Assembly (NCBI GenBank): GCA_038496445.1
Contig: JALMLS010000520.1
Location: forward strand, 62,001 to 126,000
Direction of reading: 5' to 3'
DNA: 64,000 bases
Origin: Trichosphaerium sp. ATCC 40318
Taxonomy: Eukaryota; Protista; Tubulinea
The notes under the pieces were generated by a model. The model was not told the DNA's origin. It did no database searches and worked only from the letters and a program-made list of their open reading frames with translations. Shown here in pieces: positions 2 through 53,383 of this stretch (position 1 is the stretch's first letter; each line of letters opens with the position of its first letter). Made by a program: the position numbers and the translations under genes.

Positions 2-499
2 TTGGACATGTGTAATGCTATTACAGACAATGGTATCAAAGCTTTAGAAAACGTACACACGATATGTTTACCAAGTCATATCACAGAAGAAGGTATCAAG
101 TCATTAGCTGGTGTTTCAAATATCATGATATGTGACATCAGCTGTTGCATCACAGATGATACTATCATTGCACTTAAAGGTGTTAAGAATGCATACTTAT
201 ATTGTAAGAATATTACAGATGATGGTATTAGATCGCTTAGAGGCATTCATTCGCTTAGTTTGTATGATAGAAACAAGGTTACAGATTTAGGAATTAGAGC
301 TCTTATTGGGTCTTCTTTGATACAATTCGTTCATTGTAATCAAGTTACTATGGATACAGTGAATGTACTTTTGGATAGTGGTACATCAGTGACTGCATGG
401 AAGTGTAGACTACTTGACGAAACTAACTTTGAATCTTCTTGTATTGACAAGACTGTTGACGAAATAATCTGTGAGATTTTCAATGTATTCAGCCTGTAG
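2..499 (+). CDS. LRR-repeat protein (3' part, 5' end outside window), same family as the F-box/LRR genes in this window
   Basis: Uninterrupted ORF with repeats of the type ITDxGIKAL-GVHxxxL (ITDNGIKALENVHTICL, ITDDGIRSLRGIHSLSL). Confidence 0.8.
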   Translation: MDMCNAITDNGIKALENVHTICLPSHITEEGIKSLAGVSNIMICDISCCITDDTIIALKGVKNAYLYCKNITDDGIRSLRGIHSLSLYDRNKVTDLGIRALIGSSLIQFVHCNQVTMDTVNVLLDSGTSVTAWKCRLLDETNFESSCIDKTVDEIICEIFNVFSL

Positions 500-571: not shown

Positions 572-958
572 TTATTTACAGCAGACAAAAATCATAACAA
601 GTAGTATCAATGTTATACACAATGGTAGCGTATAATTTAGAGAGTTGTTTCTGGGCAACTTGAGACTAGTTTTCGTGGGGCACTTTCGTCTGGTTTTTAT
701 CAGTATTTTATCAACAGTATCACGTGCTCGCATGTGATTGTTTATTGTTCTGGCAAATATTAGTTTCAACCTTACGCATGGTAAAGAAGCGTACATGTTC
801 GTTATGTGAGGACTCTCGTATACAACGTAGTAGTAAGGCTTTGGTTTTGAACCCTTAATGGTTTTGATCAAGCGATTCCAGTAGCATTTCGCTCCTTTTT
901 TAACACGCCCATGAAGTGATTTGTACGCCTTGTTGATCCGGTGTGGATATTTGACCAT
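572..958 (-). CDS. Hypothetical basic protein with C-terminal hydrophobic anchor
   Basis: 128-aa ATG-initiated ORF ending in a TM-like LPLCITLILLVMIFVCCK; no recognised family. Confidence 0.35.
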   Translation of the reverse strand: MVKYPHRINKAYKSLHGRVKKGAKCYWNRLIKTIKGSKPKPYYYVVYESPHITNMYASLPCVRLKLIFARTINNHMRARDTVDKILIKTRRKCPTKTSLKLPRNNSLNYTLPLCITLILLVMIFVCCK

Positions 959-1377
959 GTATAGCGACCTTTGATAGAGCTGTGGTTACGCCCAAGACAG
1001 AATAAGAATGTCCGCTATATAAAAGTTTCTGCTAGCCATTTTTCACGTTTTAGCCCGAAAGGGTACGGGGTATTTCGGGAGTAAAAATTTAGGAATAGTC
1101 CCGGGTTCTATTCAATCCTGTCGGATTTTGGATTTTATTTTATGCTTTCAAAACAGTTAAAACCTCATTATTTCACGAAACAGGGTCTTGTATTTCACCA
1201 TTTAGACACTTCAAATAAAAGCTCTTTAAGAAAAACGTGGAGATAGAAACGTACACAACACGTACTGTCTGATCTTTTTTATTGTTAATTAACATATAAC
1301 ATGCCTTTGATGTGCTCACAGAACAATTGCTTTTTACTTTTACAATGACAGCTAATCATGCTTGAACTACTGCGCAC

Positions 1378-4300
1378 TTATAGTACTTTAGTTTCATTTT
1401 CTGAGTCAATCGCGGATACATCTATCACGTTGTTGTCTAAGTCTAATAATCCTGCTTTTTCGAGTCTTTGCTCTAAATCTACAACACGTTTTTTTAAAGT
1501 GTCTATTGTTTTTTGCATTTTGTTTTTCTCGCTTATATCCATTTTCTTTTGTGCTGTAGACGTTATTTTAGTTACACCACTCATAGATGTTGACTTGTGA
1601 TCATTACTGTCTATTTCAGCGTCAGTTTTTGTCATGTAGTACATCCGTGGAACAAGCAAAGACATGATTGATATGAAAGGTCCCAAAATGATACAAAGAG
1701 ATCTTAAAATAAACGCCACTTCTCGATCACGTGATCCAAAAACCTTTAGAATAAGATCAGTTAATTGTAAACAATAAATGTGTAGTACATGAGACGTACT
1801 TGAACAATGATAATAATTATAATGAAAAAAGTAAGAGTGTAAACAGCGAATCCGATAGACCTTGAACAAACAAGTTACTCACAAAAACCTCAGTTATGCA
1901 ATACAAAGATCGTAATGGTAGAGTGGATGGAGGTTGTAGTAATATTTTATACAACGTAAACTTCAAAAAAATAAAAGAATCATTTTGTTCGGTTGTACCT
2001 TGATTCGTTGTATAGAATAGCTTTTAATTTCCATATTCTATAAACCCAATAAAGCCCATATATTAGAACGCCAGCATTGAATACCATGAGGACAACAAAG
2101 AATATTGTATCTGTCGTTGAGTTTGTACATGTAAAATAATCATCAGAAAGAACAAACTCTTCCTCTTCAACGAGTTCAGCATGACTCATACTAACAGCTG
2201 TCCATAAAGCTAATATTAGAATCTCTGAGCATACAATAGCGCCAACAATAGGTATTATCATCATATTCGTAACTTTGAATACATCTAAAGTCTTAACAAG
2301 AAAAATCTGGCCGATTCTGTAAATCCTTGCAAACATTGCTCCATAGGTAAGCTAACATCACGTGAGTATTTGCCTTCAGTATAATCTATAACTACTTACA
2401 CCAAATCCGATAGTGAGAAACCATCTTACGAGATTACAGTGCACTCCATTTGTGTGAAGCGTCCAGAAAAATACAGAAGTATACATCAATATTGTACCAA
2501 CCTTTTTTTACGACTTGTTATGTTTAAACTATTGGATTTTACAACGCACCAGTGTTAAGACAACAAACATGGGCTGTGCAGCACGTATGACTCTATTTTT
2601 GTGATAAATCAAGATCCATAGGATGAGACCAAGTGTGATTAAAACAACAACTGATACCAGTAAGAGAATAATCCGCTCGCTGTTGTACTCTGTGTGGTAA
2701 CAAACATTAACAACATTGTACTCTAAATTGTATTTAAAGACGTACTGTACCACCCATATGTGGTTTCTCTCTCATCCCATTTTGGTGCAGGATATATGAA
2801 CTGCGTTGTAGCAGCAAATAGTGGAGCTACTATTTGGGATACGGAATTCTCATCAAGCTGATGTGTTAAACCGCTTCTTCCAAGATTCTGACCATACCTA
2901 TCAAACTCAAACTCACCACAAAACCCTGTTATGTCGATAGAGTTTATAACTTCTTGAATTTCGTCAACATCAAACGAACTACATGAACGAGGTTATTTTT
3001 TTTCACCTAAAAAAGGAAAACGATTTTTGACGCTTGAAAATCACGTGCTTGGCTGTTTCGAATGCGTGTTGAATTATGTATCCTTCAGCATAACCAATCA
3101 TACCTATGCGCATTTTAGATGATTTCAAACATAGAAGAAGGAGATCCGGACAAGAGAAAGATTCAAGTTCGCACCACTGTAATTCGGTTCATCTCCGTAT
3201 AAAGCCTTGTACTGCCTATTAAAAATCATAGGAGATGTCTCAGTTCCATCGCTAATAAAATGATGATAGGCTATATCCGTATTGAATTCGTCATATCGCT
3301 CAGTACCAAGCCTTTTATCCCACTAATTATTTAATCCTTTTAGTCTTAGAAAATGGAAATTAAGTACATTTCCTCCTGCAACTGTAACATATCTCGAGTC
3401 GTCTCCTGCATTTTCTATATTACATGGTCTTGAAAGTATGTACGCCTATCACTTTGAGTAAGTAAAGCTAGTAATGATAGTCCTAGAACTATATCATATT
3501 TACATTGGCATTAAAATTCATTCGCCTTGCTGTCTTCATAAACGCAACACAAGAGTAGAAGGTTGCTCCTAGTACAACATCTATAAAACAATTCAATAAT
3601 CTAATGCTTACGATAATGCGTGTCAATAAAGAACTATTTCTGACAGTACCTGGTTTCGCGTCTTTTAACCTTGAAATAAGATTATCTATTTCCGGTTGTA
3701 ATACTGTTTCATTTGAAGAAAATGTTATACTCGTATTGTACACAAGCTCCATCCCCAAAAAAGCGATACTCCTTAGAGCGCCTTCAGCTATAGAATTTGT
3801 AAAGGCAGAATCTAGAAAAGTTACTAATCGGAACATGTGACAAAAACCTTTTGAAGTACCTTCCCAAAATACAGCGATTCTTTTTGCATTTTGAATGGCT
3901 AGTAAATTCAAAGGCTCCACCATGAACCTCGATGATGGTTGTATAAGGCTAGAAACATATTTCAGCCTTCTTCCGAATGGAACTGTACATGGCTGTTCTA
4001 AACCCTCGTCGCATATATAGTTACCAACGGTAGCTGCGCCAGCTATTACAAAGGTGAGATACAAAACAATTTTTCGGCTTTTGTTACGAAAAAACCTCAA
4101 AATCACGTGATAAAGCGAGAAAAACAGCGTTGTAACAAAAACAGTTCACTTTAATATTTCTCCCAGTATATTTCTTTTTCACGTGGAAAAACATATCTAC
4201 GTCGTATAGCTACGCTGTGCAGATGTGACAGTAAGTTTTTGTGGGAAAAAAAAAACAACCGCCTTTGCTCTTACGCACGTAACAAAGAATTTACTTTCAG

Positions 4301-4863: not shown

Positions 4864-6190
4864 GTGCACTGCTCTAGTTGAAAAAGGTGAAAAGAAAGTC
4901 AAAAAAAAGCAATCACAATCATTTTAGCATGTAAAAAAGATCGGGAGGAGTCTTTTGACGTCAAAACATAACCATCATGCTCACTCAACGCTGGTCAAGT
5001 ACTGGACAAGTTTGGTTTGCATCAAGAAAAAGAAAAGAAATGATATCAGACTTGAACAATTTATTGTTCGTGTTTGCTGTGTGCATACTTACCAACTTTT
5101 CCCATTGTTAAATGAGGTTCTTGGTATTAGTGAATGATTGAAAGCGCTTCACCATGATTGGTATTTTGCGTCAACGAAGCACACATCTGATAGTAGTGCT
5201 AACATACAAATAAGCAAACAAATGCAATGGTAGTCAAACTGACCTGTGGCTACAACCAAAGTTGTAACAATGATTGGTCCAAGACATACTAATAAATAAT
5301 ACTCCATAGCGATGAAAGCACATACCGTTCTGAGTACTCACGTAACAAACAAGGTTTACATTCCACGTTATCCACAACACCCCCTTCAGTACTATGAAAA
5401 ACAATTTGAGGTCAACATGTACTACTTTCCATACCTGCAGGACAATCTGTACAACCACCCTCTGACGTTCTTCCAAAACCACATGGCTTGCAATTTAGTA
5501 GCGCATCAACTGGTTGATGTCCAGGTAAGCAAGTCCCAGTAAATTAGTAACTTTTTAAGAGTGTATTAGTACCTGGATGATATTAATGGTACCTTTCGTG
5601 CGTAGATAATATTTTAGGCGGTACCATGTGGTTTAAAATAGCTCTATCTCGTTGACGAGGATCCCAGTACTCAGCTTTAAATATGAGACTTGCAAAGTTC
5701 TCGTATTGTATCATGACACGGTCAGTTTGATAGAAAATTATGTTCCCTGTTTTACGTGAATACAGCAAAATAAAAAACACGTGTGGTTTTTTTGACGCCA
5801 CAAAAACGTGTATTAGTACCTCCTACGCATACTACGTGACTTTCAGATGTTTCGTTGAGTGTGGCTCTTTCGATACTTCTGAAAGGCTTTTCTTTTGATC
5901 CATCCGCCTATTTTAAGCATTTTAAATGTAAAAACACGTGCCTATCGAGATTTGTTTTTTCAAAACAGTTACTACAATCGAATCGTCTAAAATGAGCTAC
6001 ATATACGCCACAATCTGCATTTAGTTAATAATAGTGGTTTTTATTACTGGCAGTGTTGTACGAAACTCTCTTCAATATGTACGGTGTGTAGAAGCATAGT
6101 AGACAAGAAAACAACGCGTGAAAAGTATGATGCATGCTGAATGGAACAGAGCGAAAAATAATTGGCTTAACAGTATTCGCGTACCCGAAT

Positions 6191-6745
6191 TAGGGTGTGG
6201 AATAAGGTCAAAGTCCTTCAAGTATTCCTCGTTTTACTAATTTCAACCTCAACAGATGCGGCCAATAACTCGGTAAATAGGGCGCAATCCACATAAGATT
6301 TTTTTGGTGGCGTTAAACCTCAATTTGGTACGGAGACTAGTAAATTTTGAAGATCATTCTTGCGCCCTAGGTTATGGCGTCGACACTGCCACAGCGGACA
6401 CCACATGCCATATAAACGCCGCTCCGTCATTTTCATGTGTATAGGATAGTTTCAGAGGCGAGAACGAGATTTTATTTCCACGTGTGTACGTCCAACCCAA
6501 TTTTAAACTCAGTTTTACGCAATCGCAGAACAAAATAAGGCTAGTACATTGGGCGTCAAGTGTCAACGAAATTTTGTACCTGTAAAAAAAGAAAACATGT
6601 TCTCAAACACAATAAAAACATTGTACCTACCGTTGACGAGCACTTTCAAGTGGATTTGTGGGATTGCGAACCCCTAACCCTAGTAAGATTCAGATAAACG
6701 TAGGGGTTTGACTGAACAAGAATTTGGGGGTTTTGCCAGAACCTA
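6191..6745. mobile_element. Non-autonomous TIR transposon (MITE-like, 555 bp)
   Basis: Flanked by TACCCGAAT at 6182-6190 and 6746-6754. Imperfect TIR: TAGGGTGTGGAATAA vs reverse complement of the right end TAGGTTCTGGCAAAA. Absent from the paralogous empty site near 50272 (GTAACCGAATTCAGAT). Confidence 0.85.
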
Positions 6746-6914
6746 TACCCGAATTCAGATAAACTACTCTACTGGTTGTTATTTTCGAGTTTTTTCTTAC
6801 TGATACGATAACTTGTAGACTATTATCAAGCAACGCGAGATGAACAAACACAAGTATTTATTCAGTAAGTTTTTTTATCATAAAAGGGTGACAAGCACTG
6901 GTTTGGGAGCAATC

Positions 6915-7331
6915 TTAGCAACTTCCACATGCTGCTTCACTCCAGCAACACCATTTATCACTTCTGATACGGAAACATAATGGAGATCCTGGGTAGCAGT
7001 ATGCAGTTGAGCCTTGAAAAAACGAAAAGTAAGTACAACCAACATTCGGATACTTTTTTTCATTATTCACGTACATTGACCACGCTTTTCGCGACCGCGT
7101 TTACGCCATCCAGGAGGACACCATCCATTTGTGTCACAGGTTTCGCCACAGAGTAATGGTCCTTGCTAAAGAAATGGTGTGAAAAAGAATTCTATGAGGT
7201 GGTAAGGAAAGAGTAGAAAAGGGGTTTACCTCAGTTGCTCTTTTAGCTCTTTCATTGAGTTCATTAGATTGGACCGCCAAGGCGAAAGTTAAAGCCGCAA
7301 GTACAAAGACAATAAGAGTAGTAGGTTTCAT
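6915..7331 (-). CDS. Secreted Cys-rich peptide precursor, 96 aa, 3 exons (7331-7230, 7165-7075, 7012-6915)
   Basis: Splicing at GT/AG gives MKPTTLIVFVLAALTFALAVQSNELNERAKRATEQGPLLCGETCDTNGWCPPGWRKRGREKRGQCSTAYCYPGSPLCFRIRSDKWCCWSEAACGSC*. Second copy at 50443-50848. Confidence 0.85.
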
Positions 7332-8319
7332 CAGGGTTTACGTTGTTGAATTCGTGAGGTGTTGTTTACGTTGGATAGTTTTAGTTTTGTGATAGTTTTG
7401 AGAAGTGAATTAAATCACATTTATTCTTTAAGATTGGTGTTTCGCATAAATATCTCATACAGAAAAGTGTGATACTGAAACTATGGTTAGAATACAGAAG
7501 AACGTGTGGTACTTAAACTACAATGAAATTTTGAGTACTTCTCTTTGCTCTTTAGTATTTCGTGAAAAATTCAAGTTTTGGTTTACGGTAAAGTTCTTAG
7601 CATAAAAGTACGGTGTGATTTTGTTTGTAACAGTGCGTGATTCAACAGTGATATAAAGCAGGTAGATAAATAGCACAGTGTCTTAACCCACAAAAAAAAA
7701 CAAGTCAGTTTTTTAACTTTGAAGTCAACCCTTTTGTTCTACTTCAACTACAAACCCTATTACACCGAAAATAAGAGAATTGATGACTTCTCGCAGAGTG
7801 ATAAAGCACAAAAGCTGTATAAAATTTTATACAATGGAAACAACATTTCTGACAATTTATTTACTGATATTCGGAAACCCAACTGTACATATTGTGGAGC
7901 TTGGCGAACCTAAGGATCAATCAATTTGTTATGTGTAAGGTTTTATAACTGCTATCAGTTCAATCAAACAACTCTTGACAACGGAAATCAAACTCTGAGG
8001 TGAAGTGTTGACGCAAACAATTTTTATGTTAAGATCATATTTCAGCCAAGCAGTAATGTTTTGCCTTCAATGGCAAACAAGTGGTTTTTTAATGTGAATA
8101 TCGTAACCATTGTAACTGTCTGACCGAATTGTAACTTGTATACAATTGGCACAATTGACGCGCGTAAATTATGTTGCTGCTGAGAATATGATATTTGAAG
8201 AAAAAACAAAAACATATGATATTTGAAGAAAAAACAAAAACTAACACTTTGTTGATGTTGTTGACTTTGTTTAATCTTGCACTTAAATCAACTGTGGCGA
8301 ACAACTTTTTGACAGGTGG

Positions 8320-8930
8320 GTTTCAGTCATTTTATTGTTGTTAACTTGCCTTACAACAAAACAGGGATAGACAACGAATACTGTGTTCGCATATTGTGCT
8401 TTGCGTTTTATTCTGTGGTCAAACTACACATGGTTATAAAGGCTCCATTACTTTTTCTTCTGAGCATCTGGCTTCTTCTCTGGGTGTTTGTAAAAGTAGC
8501 ACTTTTGATCTCTTAGTGCCTTTTCGTGATAATCACTGCGCTTACGATCCTGTGGGGTGTCGTGCATGTCGTGCCATTTTTTATGGACCAAGTGTCGAGA
8601 GCATGAGTTGTCTTTGTATTCCTTGTCTGTGCCCCATATCATATTACTCAAACCTCGACCATACTTGTTGTCTGTCATGTTGGAAGTGTTGTTGTGCTTG
8701 TTTAATGTACAATTTATTAGTTCATCTCGAGTTCCTCCAATGAACTTAGTTCCTGTTCTTGACAGATGTAGTCGCTGGTATTTTAGGGACAATTATTTCG
8801 GATTGGGCTAGAATACTACAAAGTCTACGTGAGTGAGGCTTTACTGCCTCTTTGAAATACTCGCAAGCATAAGTTCTAAAATATGTAATGTTCATGCAGT
8901 AATAAAAGAGTTCCTCTACCCTTCTCAAGC
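8320..8930 (+). pseudogene. Inverted duplicate of ~47350-47960; decayed multi-TM exon(s)
   Basis: Reverse-complement match to 47.35-47.96 kb. The hydrophobic frame (LLFLLSIWLLLWVFVKVALLIS*CLFVIITALTILWGVVHVVPF) is broken by stops. Confidence 0.7.
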
Positions 8931-9193
8931 TACGAAAAAGAATTTGAATGTGCCATTAAAGAAGGAGAGAAGAGAATTCAAGGATCTATGCAAGCACGAA
9001 ACTTGACACTGTATGATAATGCCAAAAATCACGTGCACAAATTTGTCAAGCGCAATCTTCAATTACTGTCCTTGAAAAACATACATTAAGTTAAGGCGGT
9101 TAGCCAATAAAAACAACTATGAAAGCAGTAAGTTACCCAAAAGAAAAAGATACTTACAAAACGATTTTATAGAACATTTCCGTCACCAGTCCG

Positions 9194-10598
9194 ATGTCTC
9201 TACTTGATATCCCTGTAGAGATACAAATGGATATTATGGACCTCTCGTATGAAGCCATGCGATTATGGCCGTTATTTTCAAGGTCAGCAGCAATAACAAC
9301 CAGATTTGATCATAATTTTGAAAAACATGGGAGATGGGTACGTTGAATTTATTTTACACGTGTTTTTTCATTCGTTCGAATAAACTATCATGATTGTGGT
9401 TTTGCTTTGGTAGCAAGACGTTCTACCTTATTTTTGAACCAAATTATATTGTTCCATAGTTCAGAATGTGGGTCTTCCAAGGTTTTTTTGGTTTACAAAA
9501 TATGCTCAGAGTTTTTATTTTTACAATCAGTGCTACTGTAGTTTGAAAAAAAGTAATCTTCGTTAGGTTGTGCATGATTCTGTTGGCAATAGGGCAATTG
9601 AGCAATACTTTAATGGTGGTATTGCTGAAGGATCATGTATAATTTTGTTAACAATAAACGAACAACCATACGCCACAGATGATTCAAGCAATACATCAAA
9701 CAATACATCTGAAGTTGAGTGTGGTAATTACTTACATCTTGGCTATTATCTTGATGGGAAACGTGATGGTATTTACAGAAAGTTTATTAATGAAACTCTT
9801 AGACTTGAATGTTTCTATGAGAATGGCCTTCTTCAAGGCGAGTATAAAGAGTGGTTTGAAGATGGTACATTATCAATCTTATACAACTACAGAGATGGTA
9901 AAAAAGATGGAATGTGTAGAGAGTCATACGAAAATGGGATTCTGCGATTGCTTAGTTTTTATAAAAATGATAAAAAACATGGTGAGTTTAAGTCTTACCG
10001 CGAAAATGGAGACTTACGTGAACATGGATCTTACTTGAACGGAGTTTTAGATGGTATTCGTAGACACTATTATACACACAAAAGAATTAGGTCTTTATCT
10101 CCTTACAAGAATGGTAAATTACACGGAACAGTCCAACACTATTATAAAACAGGAGACATCCGTAGTATTGCATGTTATGAATATGGTGACCTATGCGGTG
10201 AGAGAATGAAGTGGTATGAAAATGGACAGATTGCTAAAAGGTGGTTACCAAAGAATAAAACTAAACTGTATGAGGGAGAATACAGAGAATGGTATGAAAA
10301 TGGACAATTACACAAGGAGGCATACTTTAAGAATGATAGCTTCAATGGACCGTTCATGACTTGGTATGAAAGTGGTCAGAAAAAACAACAAGGCACATAC
10401 CTATTGGATAGGAAGAATGGAGTTTATGTAGAGTGGCATGAAAACGGACAGATTGCTGACACTAGCTTTTATGCAGCTGGTTTTAGAATTGGTACTCACA
10501 AGACATGGAATAAAAAAGGTGAGATGAGTATAGTGGATATTGACACTGATGTTCAAGGGGAAGGAATTCTCTTTGTAACTAGCCGTAAAAACTTCTAA
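9194..10598 (+). CDS. F-box-like + MORN-variant (YwqK-type) repeat protein; 2 exons (9194-9337, 9567-10598)
   Basis: Exon 1 is MSLLDIPVEIQMDIM...AAITTRFDHNFEKHGRW, followed by a phase-0 GTACGT...TTAG intron (9338-9566) that joins in frame to the ORF with G-x-Y-x-E-W-Y-E-N-G repeats. Confidence 0.85.
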
Positions 10599-11718
10599 TA
10601 AACATTCAACACCAACTTTTGATTCGTTCGTTGCACCACTTATTTAAACGTAAAACAGAATAGTTCCATCCCTCTAGTCTACCGCTATTTGTATTACCAA
10701 TAAACATACTTTACCTCACACTTTGGAAGATAGAAGAGAAACAATGAAAGCAAAGATGATGTGTAAGTGTCAAACTATTTAATTTATTCCCTTTTGGGGA
10801 TGTCATTCCCATAACAGCATTTTTGGAAATAAGTTTGAGTGTATACCAAATAGTTGAAGTCATAAAGTAACGCGCCAACAAGCATGAGTATTTCGTAAAT
10901 CTCGTGTTCACATTGAAATGAATTCAATCAATCAATCATACTCTGTTTTCTTTGATGAAACGATTGCTTACTTGAACAACAATTTAGCTCTTGGACACGA
11001 GATATGCTATGATAAGACCAAGTATGGATGTATAAATAATCACTTGTGTAAACACAGGAGGAATTGCGAAGAACTACAAGGTATGCATAGTACAACTAAG
11101 TTATTTTGTTTTCTCATTTTTTTCGTTTTAGGAATTGTTAACCAACAACGTTGGAATCAAATCAGAATCTTTATTCCTAGCATCTTAACTCTTCCATTAT
11201 TGTTATGTTATGCTGCTCTAGTACAAATATGGTATTGGTGTAGGCACTAAAGAGTATTGGTCACAATTTACCGTCATGAGCTCAAATAAAAACAGTTATT
11301 TGTAGTGAGCACTAGGCTTATTCAATCGTAGCATGAATATGCAACCAATCGAAAAATTTATAAAGCTTTCGATAAAGCAGTCTAAGTGTGCTAACCGAGT
11401 AATATAAACACCTTAGAATGGACAGGCCATAGTGCTACACTGTGCTTAACGAACGAGAAATAAAACAACACTCGTTCTAAATCTCAGAATCAAAAAAAAA
11501 GTATTGATGCGCACGTGTTTTTGAAAATTATGAGAAGTTTTTTCTCTATGTTGTTCTGAACTACTCCGCAATAAATTTACACAAAAAAGATTTGACCTCT
11601 TGTGCTTCTGCTCGATAGTTATTATCCATACACTTTTGCGTGTATAGCTTGGTGGGATGTCAGAAAAGAGCATAGCCAAAAAGTGCGAACAAAATTAGTT
11701 GTTAAACTGTTCTAACAT

Positions 11719-12636
11719 ACGAAAAGCGTTTTAGACCTTCCCACAGAGATTTTAGCTCTTATTTTACGTAAAACAACAAAATCTCGCTTTGCCGCTTCTC
11801 AAACTTGTCGTCGCCTTTCCTCTATCATTCACGACATTATCGGATACTGTCGCATTTACGTTTCAAGTGTTGACCAAGCAAAAGCAATTTTAAAACACTC
11901 AAGTACTCTCCAGCACACACGCATCAAACTTACTGGTAAAGCAACATCTAATGAAGTTATAAAGGCGTTTGCTGGTGTTCGTTACATTTTTCTTAGCTCA
12001 TGTGGACAGCCTTTAATTGATGAAGGATTAAAAGCACTTTCTGGTGTACATACCATTTCTCTTGATTTTACCTCGGTTACAGATGAAGGATTAAAAGCAC
12101 TTTCTGGCGCACATACCATTTCTCTTAATGATACCTCAATTGCAGATGAAGGGTTGAAAGCACTTTCTGGCGTACATACCATTTCTCTTAATGATACCTC
12201 AGTTACAAATGAAGGATTGAAAGCACTTTCTGGAGTTCACACAATCTATCTATCTAATACCTCAGTTACAGATGAAGGATTAACAGCACTTTCTGGTGTT
12301 CATACCATCCATCTATCTGATACCTCAGTTACAGATGAAGGATTGAAAGCACTTTCTGGTGTTCATACTATTTTTCTTAATAATACATCAGTTACAAATG
12401 AAGGCTTAAAAGCACTTTCCGGCGTTCATACAATCTTTCTAGAGAACACATCTGTTACAGATGAAGGGCTAAAAGCACTTGTTGGCGTCCATACCTTATC
12501 TCTGTCATATTGTTGGTACATTACAGATAAAGGGTTAAAAGAAATTGTTGGTGTAAAAAATATCTATCTGGCTAACACAAGGGTTACACCTGAAGGGTTA
12601 AAAGTTCTTTCTGGTGTACATTTTGTTAATATTTAG
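11719..12636 (+). CDS. F-box + 21-aa LRR repeat protein; reading frame begins at ACG rather than ATG
   Basis: Stop-free frame after TAA at 11713: (ACG)KSVLDLPTEILALIL...AASQTCRRLSSIIHDIIG, then tandem GVHTIxLxxTSVTDEGLKALS units of 63 bp. Confidence 0.75.
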   Translation, partial: TKSVLDLPTEILALILRKTTKSRFAASQTCRRLSSIIHDIIGYCRIYVSSVDQAKAILKHSSTLQHTRIKLTGKATSNEVIKAFAGVRYIFLSSCGQPLIDEGLKALSGVHTISLDFTSVTDEGLKALSGAHTISLNDTSIADEGLKALSGVHTISLNDTSVTNEGLKALSGVHTIYLSNTSVTDEGLTALSGVHTIHLSDTSVTDEGLKALSGVHTIFLNNTSVTNEGLKALSGVHTIFLENTSVTDEGLKALVGVHTLSLSYCWYITDKGLKEIVGVKNIYLANTRVTPEGLKVLSGVHFVNI

Positions 12637-13041
12637 ACCAATACGTTTGAACCACCAATACACAACAAAGACTCTTGGTAAGAAAGAAACACATTTATCC
12701 TAATAGATAGTTCAAACTCAGAGCAAGCATATGATGGAAATGAAAGCAATTTGTATGAAAGTAATATAAAGAAACTCAGTTCTATTTGCTATAGTAGTTG
12801 TTGCTTGCTTGCTGACGATCGCCTGTTCTGTTCGCCGGCTGAAATGTGCATCTTTTTCAGTCAGAAGCTTTAACTTGCTTTCAAGCAACTATACAGCTCA
12901 GATGCGCAATCTATGGGCGACAATATTGCAAAACTCTACTAATTTTTTATTGACTTTTGTTTGTTTGCTTTGATAATACAACTTTCTTTTTTTCTTTTCT
13001 TCTGATTTTTTGTGCTGCTTTTCAACACATTTGAAAAAAAT

Positions 13042-16000
13042 TTAAGCAAAGATTTGGGATTCTCCCTCGACACCATCAGGTTTGAAGATTTGGGATGTTT
13101 GAGCACCACCGCTGGCAAGACCATCAGCAGTAAGGACTTGGAATGCCTTAGCAGCAGCCAAAGAAGCAAGTACAAGAGCAACAATGACAGCAATGATAAT
13201 GACAGCAAGTACACCAGCACCGATGGAAATACCGGTTACAGCGGCATCACCGAGAACACAGATTGTTGAATCAACGAAACTTTGTTCACAGACGTTCTCT
13301 GCTGCTTTTGTATCAGTGGCGTTGCTGAAAGAAAGTAAGTAACAATTTGTAGAAAAAGAAAAAAAAAAAGAACACGTACTAGAAGACACAGTCAGCTACA
13401 TGACATTTATCTTTAGGAGTACATTCAATGTTGGCAATACGACATCCCAAAGTTCTAGAGTTCCGATTTAGTACTGTGAAGGAAGAATCTTTGGCGGTTT
13501 TTTTCAGAAATCCATTTTCATTCAAAATGATACGTACGGGTGACACATAGCGCCAGTTTGACATGGAATAGTAACGTTGAAGTTAGGACATTCTTGGTAC
13601 TCGTTTACACATCCTAGTGTAGGGCTAAAATAGTACGTTAAGCTTTGTTACTCAAGAAACGTAATGTGAAGAAAAAAAGTACTTCCTCGCAATAATCTCT
13701 TGTACATCCACTGAAATCGTTACATACTTCAGTTTCGTTGATAGGAGTGTTTACACATACACCAAGTGGATCGTTTCTGGTGTCACATGTATCGATGGTA
13801 CAGCTAAAGATTGAGGTTAGTCACTGCGAAGTCAAACTTTTTTTCCTTTTTTTTTTAAAACGTACTTGCTGCCATCATCGCAGAGGCTTCTGAAAGAGCA
13901 CTCTCCAGTGAGTGGGTCACAAAGAGCTTCGAAACAGTTGTTTGGTGGAAGACACTTGGTCTCATTTTGACAACCCACAGAGTTATCGCAAGAGTAGAGC
14001 AAGCACTTGTCAGTTTTGTTACAATCAAGTTTCTCGAAAACACATCCAGTGACACTAAAGAAAAAGTATAAGGTCACGTGACCAAAATATTTTCAAAGTA
14101 AAAGTATTGTTCAAACCAAGAAACAAAGGAATGCAAGGTCTGTTCACATACGGGTCACAACTGGCGACTTCACATTCGTTTCTCTTATCACAAACAACAT
14201 CTTCAGTTGTACAACCAGTATCCGGATTACAACCGTCAATGATACATGCACTGCCGCTGTCGCATACTTTAGGTGTTGCAACACACTCTCCAGTGGTTAT
14301 GTCACATGTATCAATGATACATTGGGAGTTTCTGTGGGTAAACGTTAGCAACACAAAAAAAAAATGAACTAAATATTGCTGAAAGAGTGCGTACGAGTTA
14401 CAGTCAGGAGTAGTATCTCTGATTCTGCAATTTTCTGTAGGGATATTGCTAGAACCATCAACGTCACAGAAGGTAGCTTGGCACTTGTTAGCCTAAGAAA
14501 GAGTGTAAGAGGTTAAATAATCATAACCATAAAAAACAACAAATTTTTTCGTACATCGAGCTCATCTCTGAATACTGCATCACAGTCAACTTCAGCACCA
14601 GTTCCTACGATCTGGCATTTATCACACATACGATTGACGTTTTCGCAAACACCAGTCACTGCATTACATGTGTCTGTGGTACAGAAAAGACCATCATCAC
14701 AGTCCTTTGGTCTTTCTTGACAACCAACAGCAGCTATAATTCTATGTTAGTCTCCAAGTATAATGATTTAAATCCGTACGATCACAAGTGTAAACCTTGC
14801 AAGGATCTCCCTCATTGCAATCAACATCTGTTGTCGTACAGCCTTGATTAAAAATGTTAGTTTGAAATCTCTGGGGTTTTTTTTTTCTTCAAAGACGCAT
14901 ACCAGTAACAGGATCGCAGTCGTATATTTTACATTTGTCGGTTCCAGAGCAATCTACACGTTCACGTTTACAACCATCATCACAAGTATGGATCCAGCAT
15001 GCCTAAAAAACAAGAATAAGAAACAATAGTCGTTCATGTGAACCTAAAAAAAAAACCCATACAGTTTGGAACTCGCTTGCAGCACGGCGTTCGCATTCGG
15101 CATCAGTAATAGTAGTAGATTGACATCCTGTAGCTGGGTTACAACTGGTTTCTTGACATTGGTTGGCAGGATCACACGTTACATCTTTGATGACACACTA
15201 AGACAAAGTCAAAAAAGTGAGGAAGTGGCAAAACAATTTGAGCAAACGTACACCAACAGCAGGTTCGCATGAGTTATCGGTACATTCGCTGTTATCATTA
15301 CATTGGCTCTGGATGTCTGTGAATACACAACCGACTATAAAAACGTTAGAAAACGCGATAAAGAGAAAAAATAAGAACAAGAGCAAAACGTACTTGCAGG
15401 GTCGCATGTACATTCATTGTTGTCGTTACATGTAATTGGGATTTGTACACACCCGAAACCAGCGTTATTAACACATTTAGCCTCATGGCACTCATCTTTT
15501 GGTTCACAGCTGCTAGGGCAAGTACATTCTTGTCCACAGTGGCAGAATCCGTTGCAAGAAGCACCACAGTCGTTAACAGTGTTAACTGGGCAGATAACTG
15601 TGAGGATATCTTGGAGTTTTTGGTTAAGGGAGGCGAAATCTGCAAGAACAAGTTAGAGAGAAGCCCATATAGGTTTAAGGAAGTACATACCGGCTACAGC
15701 GATGTGATCAGCTGGCCATTCGCTAGTAAAGAGTTTGAGATCATCTTCAGACAAGCTATCACCAACACCAATGGACACCATCTTGTATCCAGCGGCTCTT
15801 GCGCGGTCAGTCCATTCGATAAGTTCATCGCGACCACCACAGTTATCACAACTTCCAGTACCGCCAGGTCCCCAAACACTGTAAAGGCCGGTTAGAGAAA
15901 ATTACGGGAATAAAAAATTGTTTTTGTTAAAACCACGTACGGTCCTTGACCACGGCAACAGTCGTTGGCACATGGGCTACTACAACCACAAGCGCTCAAT

Positions 16001-17734
16001 TCGCATGGACGGTTGTTAAAACCATCAGTCAGTGTTACAATGATACCAGGTGTACCCGGTCTCTTGTTTGTTTGTAGCTCTTCGTAAGCGAGTTCAATAC
16101 CACATCCAATGCAAGTGTAAGAACTGACTTTTGTGATACCTAAAAGAATCACGTGTTAGAAATATGTGCAAAGCGGTTTTTTTTAAAAAGCGTACTTCTG
16201 AGCTGATTCAAGATAGATGCCTTAGAGGCTGACATGGTCAATAGATTACGACCAACAGTAGAGTAAAGTTTGATGGCTTTAAAAAAAAGTAAGAAAAGTA
16301 AAAGCCAAAGAAAAGGTAGTACCAAAGTTAGCGCCTGTTGGACCAACTTCAAAAGCTTCGACAAGATCTTCTGCGAAAGCCTTCAATTGATTCCACTACA
16401 ACAAATTTAGAAACAAAACAAACAAACAAATAATAATAAACGCTTATGAAAACGTACTTCATTGTTATTAATAGAACCAGACTCATCCAATACTAGGACG
16501 ATATCGAATACTTGAGAACACTCATCAGTACATCCACCGCCACCAGGTAGCTTCCTAGAAGAGGTATAAGAATAAACGTGTAGTAGAGGAGGAACAATAA
16601 TTTATCGTAATTTTTCATTTCGAAAATAATCAAAACACCGTCGCAAGTTTTTCCGTACTTTTTTTCAGCGACAGAATCCAAGAAAGCGTCATCAGGGAAA
16701 GAGCCTGTTGTGATAGCGCCGTTAAATTTCCATGTCTCTCCACTTGAGAATTCAACACTAAAAAAAATCGCTTGGTTAGATAATTATCACGTGATAATAA
16801 AAAAAAAAAATGCTGCAAAAAGAAGCGAAAAAGAATATCGCGTACAGACAGATGTCGTTACCGTTGAAGCACAAGGTATCGACTTGCCCATTGGCATTAG
16901 TTGGGTTTTCGTTAAAACATGTTTGGCAACCATCGCGTGCTGCGGTAGTACCACCTGTAGATACTAGATCTGGTATGTTTCTGTCCTCACCGAAGGCTTC
17001 GCAAGCATCTGAACACTTACGCAAGCGAAGATTCTAAACGATCCCAATATTTTGTGAGTTTGTAAAATGTGCACGTTTTTTTTGAAAATTTTACAAGTAA
17101 GCTAGCGTACCTCATCGTAAATGTATGCTTCACTCAAAGAACCAGCTTGAATGCCTGTGTAGGTCCTACCGATTGTCAGACACAAAAAAGGAAAAAAGAA
17201 AAAATCCAAATGAAAAAAAAACCAAAAGCTTTCTTGCATTTTGTAATAATTACTCCGAAAACCGCACTGTCACAACCGCTCTCAACACCCCACAACCTTT
17301 CAAAAACACAAAATTGAAGAAAGTGGCATCTCTCGAACTTTAGGAACAAAGTACCAACCAAGTAAATTTAAAAGAGGTAAATTTTTTTTACTTTGTAAGA
17401 AAAATCAAATATCGTAAACTACGAGTTTAGTAACGTACCATGCGATACGTTCATTATTTTTATCATAGTACATAGATTCGGCTTCTAGAACACCCTACAA
17501 AAGAAGTAAGAAACACAGTTGGGTAAAAACCAAAGCAAGTTGACCCTGACATTCGAAAGAGTAGACAACAAATTACAGAAAAGAAAAAGTGCCTTTCAGA
17601 AGAAAGGGGAAGGTACGTGTACGTACATTTATAAAAGGACGGTTGGTGATGACTACATCTTTAGCAGTAAAACTAGCGCGTCCGGCCGCATAGGCTAGGG
17701 CGAAAAGAACAGCGAGGAGGATGAGTTGTCTCAT
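13042..17734 (-). CDS. Type-I membrane protein: signal peptide, vWA domain (MIDAS), Dictyostelium-type Cys repeats, TM, short tail; copy 1, multi-exon
   Basis: Signal peptide MRQLILLAVLFALAYA; DIVLVLDESGS and IIVTLTDG vWA motifs; many CDDxxxCTxDxCDPxxGC repeats; TM GAGVLAVIIIAVIVALVLASLAAAK. Confidence 0.9.
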
Positions 17735-18292
17735 CTGTAGTGAAACTGAGATTTTGTTCACAAATGCGGGGACTCACGTCATTGATTTGTGTACGCTTGG
17801 TGCGTCCGTTTGCGCAAGTTCATAAAAACCGCCGAGGGGTGCTTGTATATCGTTTTGCAATAGTTTTTAAGACATTTTGATATCAGATAACGTCACGAGG
17901 TAGCATCCTTACAAACGACCTTCTAGCGGTGCTGCAAACACCATAAGCGTATTATAAGACGATACCAGAAGAAACGTCTTCTCGGAGGAAAGCGGATTAA
18001 ATCCCAAAACCCATCCCACGTTCGCTGCTGCCAGCGGCATTTTGAAGCCAATAGTATTCGCACACGAAAAACTCAAAATAAAATAAAAGTCGAACTTTCA
18101 TTGCCGCAAAAATTGTTTTGCGGCCACCGAACTTCACTTTTTCTTACATAGAAATATAACTTAAGAGGCAGGGCTAGGACGCACTAAGCTCTTACTAATT
18201 TTCATAAAGTTGTAATAAAACGCGTTAGACAGTAAAAACAGCTCTTAAGCGTCCCTCAAGTAAAAGGCGACCATTTTGTTTCGTTGGCGTCA

Positions 18293-20020
18293 TATATGGG
18301 AGGTCCTCTAATTTCACTGCTTAGATTATGCAAGACCTCTAATTCTATTGGTCAGACTATGCACACCCTCTAAGTTTCTGATTTTAAACCATTGGCAGCG
18401 TACTTTTCACAGTCCAGTGTTTTACAAAATATTGAAATTGTAAATTACCGTTCTGTTAACAGTAATTTAAACGCAAACAGCCATAAATCCCAATCCGTGA
18501 AGGCTATTTGGCGAAATGGAAATTACCATTCTGTTAACAGTAATTTAAACACAAAAACAGCCTTAGATCAGTGAAGGCTACTTGGCCTAATTACTATTAC
18601 AACAATGCCTCAACAGCGAGTTTGTTTTGCTTTTTTAGTGCTGTTTTGTTTTGGTTTTTAATTGTTTTATTGCCTCATGTTGCCTAGTAAACTGTGATCT
18701 GGTATCACAGTTTGCGGCTATTGAGGGATCACTTGCATCTTTTTTATTAAGTTGTCCGGGTAAGTGGGAAACTGTATTAAGTGTACTAACTTAATAGGGT
18801 GGACTTATGTACTCTTTTTTTAAACCAATTATAACGTACTTGACCATTACTTTTCAAGTGGCCACTTGATGTAACTTGAATCTATAACGTAGTTATTATT
18901 TTGAGGTATGAGGTTTAGATAGGGGTAAGTTGAGGACAGTTTATTGTAATGATGTATTTAGGGTTTAGTGCTAGTTTTTTGTTTACTTTTTAGATAGGTG
19001 GTTGTTTAGGACCAATAACGACACTTGTTGTACTTCAGTTTTAGTAACGTGATAGTGTACAAAACCACCTTTTACAGCGTGCTTGTCTATGTAGGAGGGT
19101 ACGTAACTCTTTTTTGTTCATGAATGCAAGATTCTTTTATTCAATTGACATACAGTGTGTTGTACCGTCTAATGAAAGTAGTGAAGTACAAACGAGCTGT
19201 TTTCCGTGAGGTGTAGCTTATTGTCAATCTACACGCGAAGCCCATGCGAGCGCAGTGCCCTTGAGTCGTCTAGGTAAATCTTGAGCGGGTATCAAGGTTG
19301 CCGAAAGTAGACAATACCTGTTTGTTAGCTTGGATCAGTCTTTTGGTAAACATTCTTTAACTATGGGAGCACGTTACCATTTATTGAGGGTGTGGTTTAT
19401 TGCCAAATCACCTACAATATACGTTTATCAATCATTGTATTTTTAAAATTTCACACTATTCAATCAACAGCGCACAAGATAACAAATACCAGCGAAGCCC
19501 AAGCTAGCCACTGCCCTTGAGCTAGTATAATCAATCTACAGCGTACTTGATAGCAGACCAGCAAAGTGCAAGCAAGTCACTACACCTGAGTTATCTAGCC
19601 ACAACCTTCAGTGTTAATATTACATGATAGATAAACGTGATAATCATAAAAGCCTTAAGATAGTACCTAAGTTAGTCTATTTCCACCCCTATCCTTAATA
19701 TTAATACACTTCCCAGCATAGCAAAACGTGTGGTTTATACGCCACCTACACAACAACATGTTAACACTATCAATCTACAACACACTTGATAACCATGAAC
19801 CAGCGAAGCCCAAGCGAGCCACTGCTCTTAAGTTACTCTACTCAATCAACAATGCACAAGATAACCAAGACCAGCGAAGCCCAAGCGAGCCACTACCCTT
19901 AAGTTAGCTAGACACAACCTTGCTCTGGTAGCAAGGTTTGGCGTTTAATATACCACACATTTTGCTATAGGCTGGGAAACTGTATTAAGGTGCTTTAACT
20001 GTGTTAAGTTACTGCCCCTT
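18293..20020. repeat. ORF-poor block of short tandem and dispersed repeats, absent from the duplicated copy
   Basis: ~31-bp CCTCTAA.. tandem at ~18307; AATTACC.TTCTGTTAACAGTAATTTAAAC twice (~18443, ~18521); GCGAAGCCCA.GC.AGC four times (~19235, 19491, 19802, 19873). Confidence 0.7.
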
Positions 20021-20455
20021 AAGCGCCTTGAATTTTTTATCAGGTGGGTTACGGGCAACACGTTGTAGACAACTCTCAGGGTGGGTAGTAGTGAATATTT
20101 GTGAATGTAGGCTGTATTTTAATATTCAAATTATTCATTCATAACGGAAGGGCGTTAGACTGTCCGTTAGCCGTTATGCTGTACGCCCAGCTTCAGTAAA
20201 AAGTTTGGTATCTAGATACCCAAAAAGTAACGTCTAGACGCCTAGAAAGTACTTGTCTTTGGTAACTTCAAAAAAGGAAAATTTTGTCGGCGTGAATTAT
20301 TTATTTACAACCAAAACATTTCAATAAAGTGGACTTCAGACCGCTCTTCTAGTTGGAAACATAATACTTGATTTTTGGTGTCTCTGTTCGTATTAATCAA
20401 TCATTCTTTTTTATTTTTCTGTGACACTTGTTTGTTTCTAAATTTTTGGCTAAAC

Positions 20456-21109
20456 TAGCGATGTTCCAAACGGATAGATTGCAAAATTCGTATTTGAACC
20501 AAATTTTCTTGGTTTATTCGAATATATTCTTCTCGCTTTTTTTGTGGTGAGATAAAACGGCACAAATTACATCCTTATTGCTGTCCTGAACCCATTTTTT
20601 TACATCCGAACACGTCTGAGACTTTTTTTAATAGAGCAAGTGATACAGATAAAACTACAAAATTGTGTTAAAATATGTTTTACCTCAAGTGATGGCTATT
20701 TCTACGCGTGGAAAGTACTAAAAAGTGGTTTTGAGACAGCAAAAAAATAGATCACGTGGCGTGCTCAAGATTGGCTCGAATTGTCAAAAAAACGTCACCA
20801 CTGGCACAATTTCACACAACAAAAGTGTCGGTTAGGCATACTGTGACTTAGTTTTACCGCTAAAATGTAGATATCTTAAACTCACTCAATATAGGGCTTT
20901 CAACCACTCTATGTATAGAAATATGCATTTTAAAACGTATGAGAGTGGTTTGGATGAACAAAAAGCACTTGGTGATTAAAAAAAAAGCCAACAACTTTCA
21001 GTTTCACAGTCGCTCTTCTCTGAAAACCGAATCGGAATATATTCGACTATTTCCAACTTTTTACGTTCTGGCGATAGATTCGGTATTCTATTCGTTTGGA
21101 ACATCGCTA
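20456..21109. mobile_element. hAT-type non-autonomous element (654 bp)
   Basis: Perfect 17-bp TIR TAGCGATGTTCCAAACG / CGTTTGGAACATCGCTA. Perfect 8-bp TSD GGCTAAAC at 20448-20455 and 21110-21117. Confidence 0.92.
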
Positions 21110-21294: not shown

Positions 21295-22552
21295 ATGCGC
21301 AATCAGACAATTACCATCTATTAAACCTCCCGCTGGAGATTCAGCTTGATATTATAGATTTGGACTCATTTGTGTATTTAATTTGGCCGATTATGTCGAA
21401 ACAGGCGGCTAAGACCACAAGGTTTGATAATGAGATGAACAAGCATGGAAAATGGCAGGCACATATCAATAACATACTTGTAGATCAAACCTACTGGAAA
21501 CACGGTGTACAAGAGGGGCCATAGTTTTTTCCGAATTTTCCGAAAACAAAAATTCGAAAAAATAGAATTCGTAGAAAGATGCATAGCTAGGGCAGTCCAC
21601 TAAACTAGAAAGCGCCTGGTTCACTTACGGTCGGGTCCTCGCTGTGCTCGGAACTAGAACCCGACCTTCGCTCACATATAGTGATCCATTGGTGGGTATA
21701 GGCATTCGGTTTTTGTATCGAATTCTATTTTTTCGAATTTTTTCTTTCGAAAAATTCAAAAAAAACGTGGGTCCGGTACAAGATGGAGAATGCAAGGAAT
21801 GGTATGACAATGGCCAATTGAGGAGTAGTGGAAATTACATCAATGGTAAGAGAGAAGGAGATTTCAAGAAATGGTATGATAATGGCCAACTGTGTAACCG
21901 TGGAAATTACATCAATGGTAAGAGAGAAGGAAAGTTCAAGAAATGGTATGATGATGGCCAATTGTGTGGCCAGCAGAATTACATAAATGATAAATGTGAA
22001 GGAGTATACAAGGAATGGTATTGGAACAATGGCTAATTATGGTGCCAGTGTAATTACATCAATGGTGAGCTAGAAGGAGATTTCAAGAAATGGTATGACA
22101 ATGGCCAATTGAAAGAGCAGTGTATTTACATCAATGGTAAGAGAGAAGGAGATTTCAAGAAATGGTATGACAATGGCCAATTGTTTAATCAGCAGAATTA
22201 TATAAATGATAAACATGAAGGAGAATACAAGGGTTGGTATGATAATGGCCAATTGTGTGGCCAGCAGAATTACATAAATGATAAACGTGAAGGAGAATAC
22301 AAGGGTTGGTATGATAATGGCCAATTGTGCGGCCAGCAGAATTACATAAATGATAAACGTGAAGGAGAATACAAGAGTTGGTATGATAATGGCCAATTGA
22401 AAGAGCAGTATAATTACATCAATGGTAAGAGAGATGGAGAATACAAGAGATGGTATGTCAATGGCCAGTTGTGGGCTTTATGTTATTACATCAATGGGGA
22501 GCAAAAAGGAGAACATAAACTATGGCTTAAGAATGGTCAATTGTGGGCGTAA
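21295..22552 (+). pseudogene. F-box-like + MORN-variant repeat pseudogene, disrupted by a MITE and a nonsense codon
   Basis: N-terminus LLNLPLEIQLDIID...AAKTTRFDNEMNKHGKW; insertion at 21515-21775; in-frame TAA at 22034-22036 where CAA is expected; 72-bp repeats GEYKGWYDNGQLCGQQNYINDKRE; no in-frame ATG found. Confidence 0.85.
21515..21775. mobile_element. MITE (261 bp) with ~57-bp imperfect TIRs and 8-bp TSD
   Basis: TSD GTACAAGA at 21507-21514 and 21776-21783. TIR core AAAAATTCGAAAAAATAGAATTCG and its reverse complement. Removing the element plus one TSD restores HGVQDGECKEWY. Confidence 0.92.
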
Positions 22553-23803: not shown

Positions 23804-25240
23804 CTATCTCTTTTTTGACCAATACATCATTGGAGAATAAAACGCACTTGAAAAGTACCTCATCCAAGCCCATACAAAACGACGTAAGATATGGAACGGG
23901 AACAATATTGTGTTGAATGATCTCATCATTAAACTGCTGCTTCTTTTCTTGTTTCTGGTGTTGGTACCAAAGCGGTTTTGTTTCATGTTTTTTCTACCAC
24001 TAAACCATCTCTTGATTTGCTCATTATCTTCTTTTTCTTTGATTGGTTGTCCATCCTCAGTCCACTCTTTCATTGTACCACATACTTCCCCATCAACCCA
24101 CATGCCTTGTGTCATGAGTTGTCCGTTTTCATACCACTCTTTTATCTCACCATGTTTCTCACCATCTACCCATGTGCTTTGTCGTAATAGTTGACCAGAT
24201 TTATACCACTCTTTGGTTTCTCCATTTTGCTTACCATTAACCCACAAACTGCATAACTTCAGTTTTCCATTTTTATACCAGCTTTTGCACTCACCATTCT
24301 GTTTTTGGTAAACCATATTTCCTAGTGCCTTAAGTTGTCCGTTTTCGTACCACTCCTTGATTTCACCGTGTTCCTTGCCATCAACCCATGTGGCTGTTTG
24401 TTGGAGTTGTCCGTTTCTATACCATAACCTGCCTTCACCACATTGCTTACCATCAATTATCAATGCTTGTGCCTTAAGTTGTCCATTGTCATACCATTCC
24501 TTAATTTCACCATGTTGCTTATCATCAACCCACATGGATTGTATCTTAATTCGTCCATTTTCATGCCACTGTTTGCGTTCACCATGTTGTTTATCATCAA
24601 CCCACAATGTTTGTGTCTTACGTTGTCCATTTTCATACCATACTTTGCATTCACCACATTGTTTACCATCAGCCATCATTGCTTGTGCCTGAAGTTGTCC
24701 ATTGTCATACCATTCCTTAATTTCACCGTGTTGCTTGTCATCAACCCACATGGATTGTGACTTAATTTGTCCATTTTCATACCACTCTTTGCGTTCACCA
24801 TGTTGTTTATCATCAACCCACAATGTTTGTGTCTTACGTTGTCCTTTTTCAAACCACTCATTGGCTTCTCCATTTTTCTTACCATCCACATAAATGATCC
24901 ATACAGAAAGTTGGTTGTTATCATTGTCATACCATACTTTCAAATCACCACTTAATTCGCCCTCAACCCACATAATTTGTGCACTAATGTTACCACTTTT
25001 ATACCACTCTTTAGATTCGCCATGTAGCTTGCCATTGTTCAAATATTCAATGGACCTTACTTTTCCTGTGTTGTACCATCTGATCCATTTCCCTTTACGT
25101 TGTAGAGATTCATCAAAATGTGTGTTGATTGCTGCTGTCTTTGATAGGGTATGAAATTTTGTAAAGGTCTCCTTGTTGAATGTACAGATTTCTTGTTGAA
25201 TTTCACATGGAAGATCAAGTAACGTCAAAGAAGAAGACAT
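23804..25240 (-). CDS. F-box-like + MORN-variant repeat protein, intronless
   Basis: 478-aa ORF starting LLDLPCEIQQEI, then 24-aa repeats of the type GEIKEWYDNGQLxxQxxWVDDKQH. Confidence 0.9.
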   Translation of the reverse strand: MSSSLTLLDLPCEIQQEICTFNKETFTKFHTLSKTAAINTHFDESLQRKGKWIRWYNTGKVRSIEYLNNGKLHGESKEWYKSGNISAQIMWVEGELSGDLKVWYDNDNNQLSVWIIYVDGKKNGEANEWFEKGQRKTQTLWVDDKQHGERKEWYENGQIKSQSMWVDDKQHGEIKEWYDNGQLQAQAMMADGKQCGECKVWYENGQRKTQTLWVDDKQHGERKQWHENGRIKIQSMWVDDKQHGEIKEWYDNGQLKAQALIIDGKQCGEGRLWYRNGQLQQTATWVDGKEHGEIKEWYENGQLKALGNMVYQKQNGECKSWYKNGKLKLCSLWVNGKQNGETKEWYKSGQLLRQSTWVDGEKHGEIKEWYENGQLMTQGMWVDGEVCGTMKEWTEDGQPIKEKEDNEQIKRWFSGRKNMKQNRFGTNTRNKKRSSSLMMRSFNTILFPFHILRRFVWAWMRYFSSAFYSPMMYWSKKR

Positions 25241-50442: not shown

Positions 50443-50848
50443 TTAGCAACTTCCACATGCTGCTTCACTCCAGCAACACCATTTATCACTTCTGATACGG
50501 AAACATAATGGAGATCCTGGGTAGCAGTATGCAGTTGAACCTTGAAAAAACGAAAAGTAAGTACAACCAACATTCGGATACTGTTTTTTTCATTGTTCAC
50601 GTACATTGACCACGCTTTTCGCGACCGCGTTTACGCCATCCAGGAGGACACCATCCATTTGTGTCACAGGTTTCGCCACAGAGTAATGGCCCTTGCTAAA
50701 GAAATGGTGTGAACAAGAATTCTAGGAGGTGGTAAGAAGGGGTTACCTCAGTTGCTCTTTTAGCTCTTTCGTTGAGCTCATTAGATTGGACCGCCAAGGC
50801 GAAAGTTAAAGCCGCAAGTACAAAGACAATAAGAGTAGTAGGTTTCAT
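50443..50848 (-). CDS. Secreted Cys-rich peptide precursor, copy 2 (same protein as 6915-7331)
   Basis: Same three exons and splice sites; the coding differences I found are all synonymous. Confidence 0.85.
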
Positions 50849-53327: not shown

Positions 53328-53383
53328 GTGATGGTAAAATTGATTTTAGCGAATTTGTTGAGATGATGACATGCGCAGATTGA
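53328..53383 (+). pseudogene. Isolated last exon of a calmodulin/centrin-like EF-hand gene
   Basis: TTATAG acceptor, then (G)DGKIDFSEFVEMMTCAD*. No upstream EF-hand exons found. Confidence 0.55.

Follow-up and report, generated by a model that had tools for sequence, protein, structure and literature searches.

A predicted three-exon gene for a ten-cysteine secreted prepropeptide with convertase-type sites, found in two copies in Trichosphaerium

Does the interval at 6915–7331 of a 64,000-nt stretch of DNA from the protist Trichosphaerium sp. ATCC 40318 (contig JALMLS010000520.1; the whole stretch, of ~37 % GC, is called the window below) hold a spliced gene for a small secreted peptide, and if it does, how would the product be cut and folded, what is it related to, and is it kept by selection? 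The original prediction, made from the letters alone, proposed a three-exon gene for a precursor with a signal peptide, a pro-piece ending in an RxKR motif and ten cysteines in an unfamiliar framework, together with a second copy in the window and a history of purifying selection. Taking all the evidence together, we find that a real, lineage-restricted gene for a convertase-processed secreted prepropeptide is the best overall explanation of the locus, with a somewhat better than even chance of being right as a whole.

The first copy (copy A) lies on the minus strand at 7331–6915, where three exons are joined via two GT..AG introns with the frame kept exactly, and the spliced product of 96 aa begins with a predicted signal peptide, continues with a pro-piece of 12 aa and ends in a 65-aa region that contains 10 cysteines. 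Exon 1, read from the sequence as 34 codons at 7331–7230, opens with the start codon and the predicted signal peptide (residues 1–19, 7275–7331), which is followed by the pro-piece (residues 20–31, 7239–7274), whose last residues, RAKR, form an R-x-K-R convertase motif; both were placed by reading and translation, and the final three codons of the exon (7230–7238) start the mature region. The signal peptide and the cleavage sites were judged by inspection, the features of the former being a Lys in the n-region, a 16-residue hydrophobic core and A-L-A at positions -3 to -1. Intron 1 (7166–7229, 64 nt, gtaaac...tttag, phase 0) leads to exon 2 (7075–7165), whose 30 codons and 1 nt encode a 3-Cys segment and the basic stretch RKRGREKR, and whose open frame of 32 aa runs between the TAG contained in the acceptor and a TGA that follows two codons beyond the donor. 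Intron 2 (7013–7074, 62 nt, gtacgt...tcaag, phase 1) was, like intron 1, read directly from the sequence, and exon 3 (6915–7012) supplies the 2 nt that finish a split Cys codon, 31 codons with 6 further cysteines, and a TAA stop. An AATAAA polyadenylation-type signal at 6857–6862, ~55 nt past the stop and on the same strand, is kept in both copies.

The exons match modules, namely signal plus pro-piece, chain 1 plus linker, and chain 2, and the cysteines are spaced C-x3-C-x5-C ... C-x4-C-x6-C-x8-CC-x5-C-x2-C, with RKRGREKR at 7105–7082 splitting the ten as 3 + 7, an even number in total and an odd one in each half. For Cys density, exon 3 ranks among the highest 1 % of stop-free 31-aa windows, and the presence of two R-x-[KR]-R motifs (RAKR and REKR) within 96 aa has P = 0.002 against the six-frame background of the same window. 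The introns are also of a local kind: those of the window are short (~50–95 nt), with GTAYGT donors, TTTAG or ACAG acceptors and CTAAC-like branch sites, and another of its multi-exon genes has like donors (GTACGT, GTATGT), TTTAG acceptors and introns of ~60–95 nt. On translation, the junction coordinates and peptide pieces that had been proposed proved exact, the layout of signal peptide (by inspection), pro-piece and RxKR motif was present, and the 3-Cys/7-Cys division around the basic stretch agreed with our reading.

With RAKR and REKR both lying behind a signal-peptide-like N-terminus, the precursor has the makings of a convertase substrate. In the proposed scheme, the signal peptide would take the precursor into the ER and then be removed after A-L-A, a step that is likely, and the 10 cysteines would pair into five disulfides. 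A kexin/furin-type convertase of the late secretory pathway would cleave after RAKR, freeing a 65-aa disulfide-rich peptide; we regard this cut as quite probable. The exposed RKRGREKR between Cys3 and Cys4 would in this scheme probably be cleaved too, giving one chain with 3 Cys and another with 7, and since the Cys count is odd in each half, this second cut would leave the chains held by at least one inter-chain disulfide. As a whole, we put a two-chain product arising from a cut in the basic stretch at somewhat under an even chance. Animals and fungi are not alone in having kexin-like convertase genes, three being known in Acanthamoeba (10.1101/802215); we found none within the window. Once secreted, the product would act extracellularly, whether to defend the cell, to compete, to handle prey or to signal between cells. 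That the peptide is secreted, is cut at both sites, forms two chains and works outside the cell is what we infer from the precursor, and a more exact role as toxin, antimicrobial or pheromone is a guess.

The main rival to the two-chain reading is a single-chain 10-Cys domain, in which RKRGREKR would be a functional cationic loop for membrane, glycan or receptor binding and the RAKR pro-piece would be the only part lost. The basic stretch does sit inside the Cys-rich region, between Cys3 and Cys4, where a folded disulfide-rich domain may shield it from cleavage, and our searches turned up no two-chain relative. The net charge of the peptide is cationic with the linker kept (~ +3), as in many membrane-active peptides, and anionic (~ -2 for the two chains together) with the linker removed. 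However, REKR is a perfect R-x-K-R motif with RKR just before it, intron 2 comes directly after the linker and so marks it as a module boundary, and the Gly and Pro residues on its flanks suggest an exposed, flexible loop. For these reasons we hold the single-chain domain to be possible but doubtful. If the two-chain product is formed, its net anionic character after loss of the linker speaks against an antimicrobial peptide of the classical cationic type; rich in Trp and Tyr as well, the product could still be a toxin, a carbohydrate binder or a signalling peptide.

For a role in competition or defence, the nearest analogue is the yeast killer preprotoxins K1 and K28, which are described as Kex2-processed, disulfide-linked alpha/beta heterodimers (10.1101/2024.10.11.617966, PMC13211469). 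The likeness is that of a secreted precursor of a microbial eukaryote with basic sites, cut by kexin into disulfide-linked chains, the latter being what we propose here. The killer toxins differ in being several times larger, in having a long excised gamma segment and in being often encoded by dsRNA viruses, and we found no sequence similarity to them in Pfam, in PDB sequences or among 1.84 billion representative proteins, so that what is shared is the processing logic only. A second resemblance is to the venom and defence prepropeptides of animals (cnidarian, cone-snail and spider), which likewise have a signal, a pro-piece ending in K/R-R and a Cys-rich mature peptide of 30–70 aa with many disulfides, with one exon per module. 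Here the host is instead a protist, the internal polybasic stretch is unusual, and we know of no described Cys framework that this one matches.

The second copy (copy B) lies at 50848–50443, on the minus strand too, so that it repeats copy A in the same orientation at a distance of 43.5 kb. By alignment and tblastn, its exons fall at 50747–50848, 50605–50695 and 50443–50540 (the last including the stop codon), separated by introns of 51 nt (50696–50746) and 64 nt (50541–50604). When each exon peptide was compared with the window by tblastn, it matched at exactly two places, both at 100 % identity, and no third copy was found in the window. Both copies encode an identical protein. Aligned with each other, their coding sequences differ by exactly the four changes that had been predicted (GAA/GAG, AAT/AAC, GGA/GGG and TGC/TGT), all of them synonymous transitions, with 0 non-synonymous or disabling differences and no coding indels. 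The introns differ in length: the predicted indel in intron 1 is a 13-nt deletion in copy B, and intron 2 additionally carries 2 extra nt in that copy. In keeping with this, an unspliced 53-aa ORF at 6915–7076 in copy A has no in-frame counterpart in copy B, and the ORF that reads through the end of exon 1 is 65 aa long in copy A versus 50 aa in copy B. Since the intron indels are not multiples of three and alter or destroy the unspliced ORFs of copy B, the spliced model is favoured over the unspliced ORF.

Self-BLAST places copy B within a direct repeat block (5106–7680 versus 48170–51399), itself part of a duplication mosaic of 5106–20761 versus 47438–61538 at 89–95 % identity, in which some blocks have an inverted, palindrome-like orientation and a changed order. 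Such a mosaic could be a true rearranged duplication or the assembly of diverged haplotypes. Were it the latter, or another assembly artefact within one contig, the gene would be real but single-copy, and a window full of 89–95 % identical blocks is indeed what misassembled heterozygous genomes look like. Against this, the blocks alternate in orientation (5.1–7.7 kb direct, 8.3–8.9 kb and 10.4–18.3 kb inverted), ~25 kb of unique sequence lies between them, and indels of 0.5–0.9 kb set them apart. A mosaic of direct and inverted blocks resembles a rearranged segmental duplication and is unlike collinear haplotigs, and we therefore consider a single-copy gene improbable and go on with two paralogous copies.

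Downstream of both copies, on the same strand, runs a neighbour gene that was originally said to have decayed while the peptide gene stayed intact. The copies of this neighbour have a common exon (5583–5801 beside copy A, 49672–49875 beside copy B), and ~890 nt kept beside copy B (48804–49692) is absent beside copy A, where the region carries a 555-nt insertion at 6191–6746. Beside copy B the neighbour (48170–49875) is the more complete of the two and contains beta-helix-like open segments (48981–49494) and a TNFR-like Cys-rich piece (48636–48827). The claim is thus partly borne out: the peptide gene is intact in both copies, and its neighbour, which lacks the ~890 nt beside copy A, is not.

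Other features of the window, observed in passing, include a conserved element at 8396–8743 (+) and 47566–47769 (-), which goes with the duplication but is inverted between the copies, with a ~250-nt core that is ~99 % identical versus ~90 % in its flanks. One frame of this element, on a candidate coding strand, packs ~19 Cys into 67 aa, includes CCC and CxC motifs, looks metallothionein-like and has no signal peptide; its first codon is ATG in copy B but GTG in copy A, and its Pfam search was empty. A multi-exon gene at 17761–13042 (-), with a duplicate at ~54041–59631 (+), encodes a secreted membrane protein with a signal peptide, a weak VWA match, Dictyostelium-type (CTDC-like) Cys-rich repeats and a TM segment, at Pfam scores under the curated cut-offs. 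It looks like the Sib proteins of Dictyostelium, which are integrin-beta-like, a likeness that would suit an amoebozoan-like host. MORN_2, a repeat variant that is mostly bacterial, occurs in intron-poor ORFs built of 72-nt (24-aa) repeats at 9570–10598 (+), 21644–22552 (+) and 23804–25240 (-), the array at 21.8–22.5 kb being broken by stop codons. Genes or fragments with an F-box and LRR_6, in 63–66-nt tandem repeats, lie at 28139–29038 (+), 37617–38708 (-), 12019–12621 (+) and 2–499 (+), and the best relatives of a 299-aa F-box/LRR ORF are two MMETSP (marine protist transcriptome) proteins at 46–50 % identity. A further multi-exon gene at 572–2336 (-) has a class-C (7tm_3) GPCR exon at 1980–2336. 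A search of Rfam gave no match, and exact look-ups of seven ORFs of the window found none of them in the protein collection.

To what is the peptide related? All searches for relatives were run exon by exon. Against Pfam-A (hmmscan, E <= 10), neither the individual exons nor the 53-aa unspliced ORF gave a match. The large protein libraries were covered by a word search with exons 1 and 3 and by HMMER with exon 3. For the word search of 5.8 billion proteins, open stretches were chosen long enough to admit a 96-aa relative, and neither the exon 3 stretch (61 aa, region 22–61) nor the exon 1 ORF (65 aa, region 1–40) brought up a candidate. HMMER, run with exon 3 against the 1.84 billion representatives, returned three matches at E = 4e-7 to 4e-4, which we rejected as spurious: all are long tandem-repeat proteins, one with RCC1-like repeats, whose scores sum 4–12 weak stretches. 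Among PDB sequences exon 3 had no match, and exon 2 met MBD6 and AVR-Pik at E ~0.5–1 on the word P-P-G-W, a chance-level result that was also rejected. Scans of metagenome, viral and prokaryotic contigs gave pattern matches, none of which was confirmed as a relative by tblastn. These queries are short (31 aa against so many proteins) and so detect only fairly close relatives, roughly those more than half identical. The window's own protein is missing from the protein libraries too, so the gene is probably unannotated.

Structure prediction for exon 3 alone (AlphaFold) gave one beta-hairpin at low confidence (pLDDT 62, pTM 0.25), so that the model draws no support from a fold. The view that the Cys framework is unfamiliar was upheld, in that nothing matching it appeared in Pfam, PDB or the large protein libraries, and the best explanation for the results would be a lineage-restricted gene kept as two paralogous copies, with the reservation that the searches would detect close relatives only.

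The peptide might instead belong to one of the described disulfide-rich families, such as the insulin/relaxin-like, hevein/CBM18 or knottin families, but be so short and have diverged so far that sequence methods miss it. Queries of 30 aa from single exons are insensitive, and the resemblance to insulin/relaxin prohormones is one of design: both have a signal peptide, two Cys segments, a separator bounded by convertase sites, an intron at the linker, and a predicted two-chain product with inter-chain disulfides, with L-C-G in chain 1 and CC in chain 2. The precursor differs from these prohormones in its 10 cysteines (3 + 7, as opposed to 6 as 2 + 4) and their spacing, in a ‘connecting peptide’ of merely 8 basic residues, and in the presence of an N-terminal pro-piece. 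The six core cysteines of insulin read C-G-x10-C in the B chain and CC-x3-C-x8-C in the A chain; here chain 1 reads C-G-x2-C-x5-C and chain 2 ends CC-x5-C-x2-C, and the insulin family profile PF00049 matched none of the exons at E <= 10, at the low sensitivity of 30-aa pieces. Hevein/CBM18 peptides are likewise small and secreted, with 8–10 Cys, many Gly, Pro and exposed aromatic residues, and a CC doublet followed by C-G, and the Trp/Tyr-rich motifs C-P-P-G-W and W-C-C-W recall such aromatic carbohydrate-binding peptides. The hevein pattern is C-x4-5-CC-x5-C-x6-C, from which the spacing here also differs, and PF00187 gave no match at E <= 10. The knottin, or inhibitor cystine knot, is a three-disulfide topology (I-IV, II-V, III-VI). 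Considering that Pfam was empty even at E <= 10, that PDB sequences held no meaningful match and that the Cys spacing is unlike both the insulin A/B and hevein patterns, we judge membership of one of these families to be quite improbable, and continue with the lineage-restricted gene.

Whether selection maintains this gene was judged from the differences between its copies. The probability that all four of four coding changes would be synonymous is P = 0.002 over all changes and P = 0.012 when transitions only are counted, and at non-coding rates 8.5–14.7 non-synonymous changes would be expected versus 0 observed (P = 2e-4 to 4e-7). All 11 of the 11 gap events fall in non-coding sequence (P = 0.011). 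Substitution divergence is 1.4 % in the CDS versus 6.5 % over all aligned non-coding sequence and 3.8 % in its proximal part; by segment, it is 7.8 % in intron 1, 1.6 % in intron 2, 3.0 % in the 3′ flank, 4.2 % in the proximal 5′ flank and 17 % in the distal 5′ flank, the proximal 5′ flank (7332–7480, minus strand) being a candidate promoter and 5′ UTR. A Fisher test of coding versus proximal non-coding divergence gave P = 0.07. Since no homologue shows conservation outside this single recent duplication, the selection signal depends on four substitutions. With that scope, the predicted signal of purifying selection is real by the synonymous-only differences and the indel-free CDS, and this is good evidence for reading the locus as a gene under purifying selection, drawn from one young duplication. 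That chance open segments in recently duplicated DNA happen to show an all-synonymous pattern among four substitutions is very improbable: the duplication is young with little divergence to judge by, the homologue searches are empty and the Fisher test reaches only P = 0.07, but against this stand the P-values for synonymous changes (0.002–0.012), for the indel-free CDS (0.011) and for the two RxKR motifs (0.002), the textbook signal peptide and pro-piece layout with 10 Cys, the frame-exact splice sites kept in both copies and the AATAAA after the stop codon. We accordingly hold it to be highly probable that the locus is a real coding gene.

At present, the finding amounts to one orphan gene for a small secreted Cys-rich peptide, and such genes are common in eukaryotic genomes; judged on its sequence, the peptide is very probably a new orphan example of this familiar kind, one that bears convertase sites. 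A bolder reading, which we consider unlikely but worth stating, is that this unicellular eukaryote may have an undescribed family of convertase-processed, disulfide-linked two-chain peptides whose 3 + 7 Cys framework is new. The peptide would then serve as a signal resembling a hormone or pheromone, or as a toxin of the killer type, and its insulin-like precursor logic would have an origin of its own, separate from animals and fungi. Provided that the gene is expressed and its product processed as we infer, the known disulfide scaffolds would gain a new one, two-chain maturation in the style of prohormones would have a possible example in a protist lineage that has been little studied, and the locus would be a concrete case of short multi-exon peptide genes escaping ORF-based annotation.
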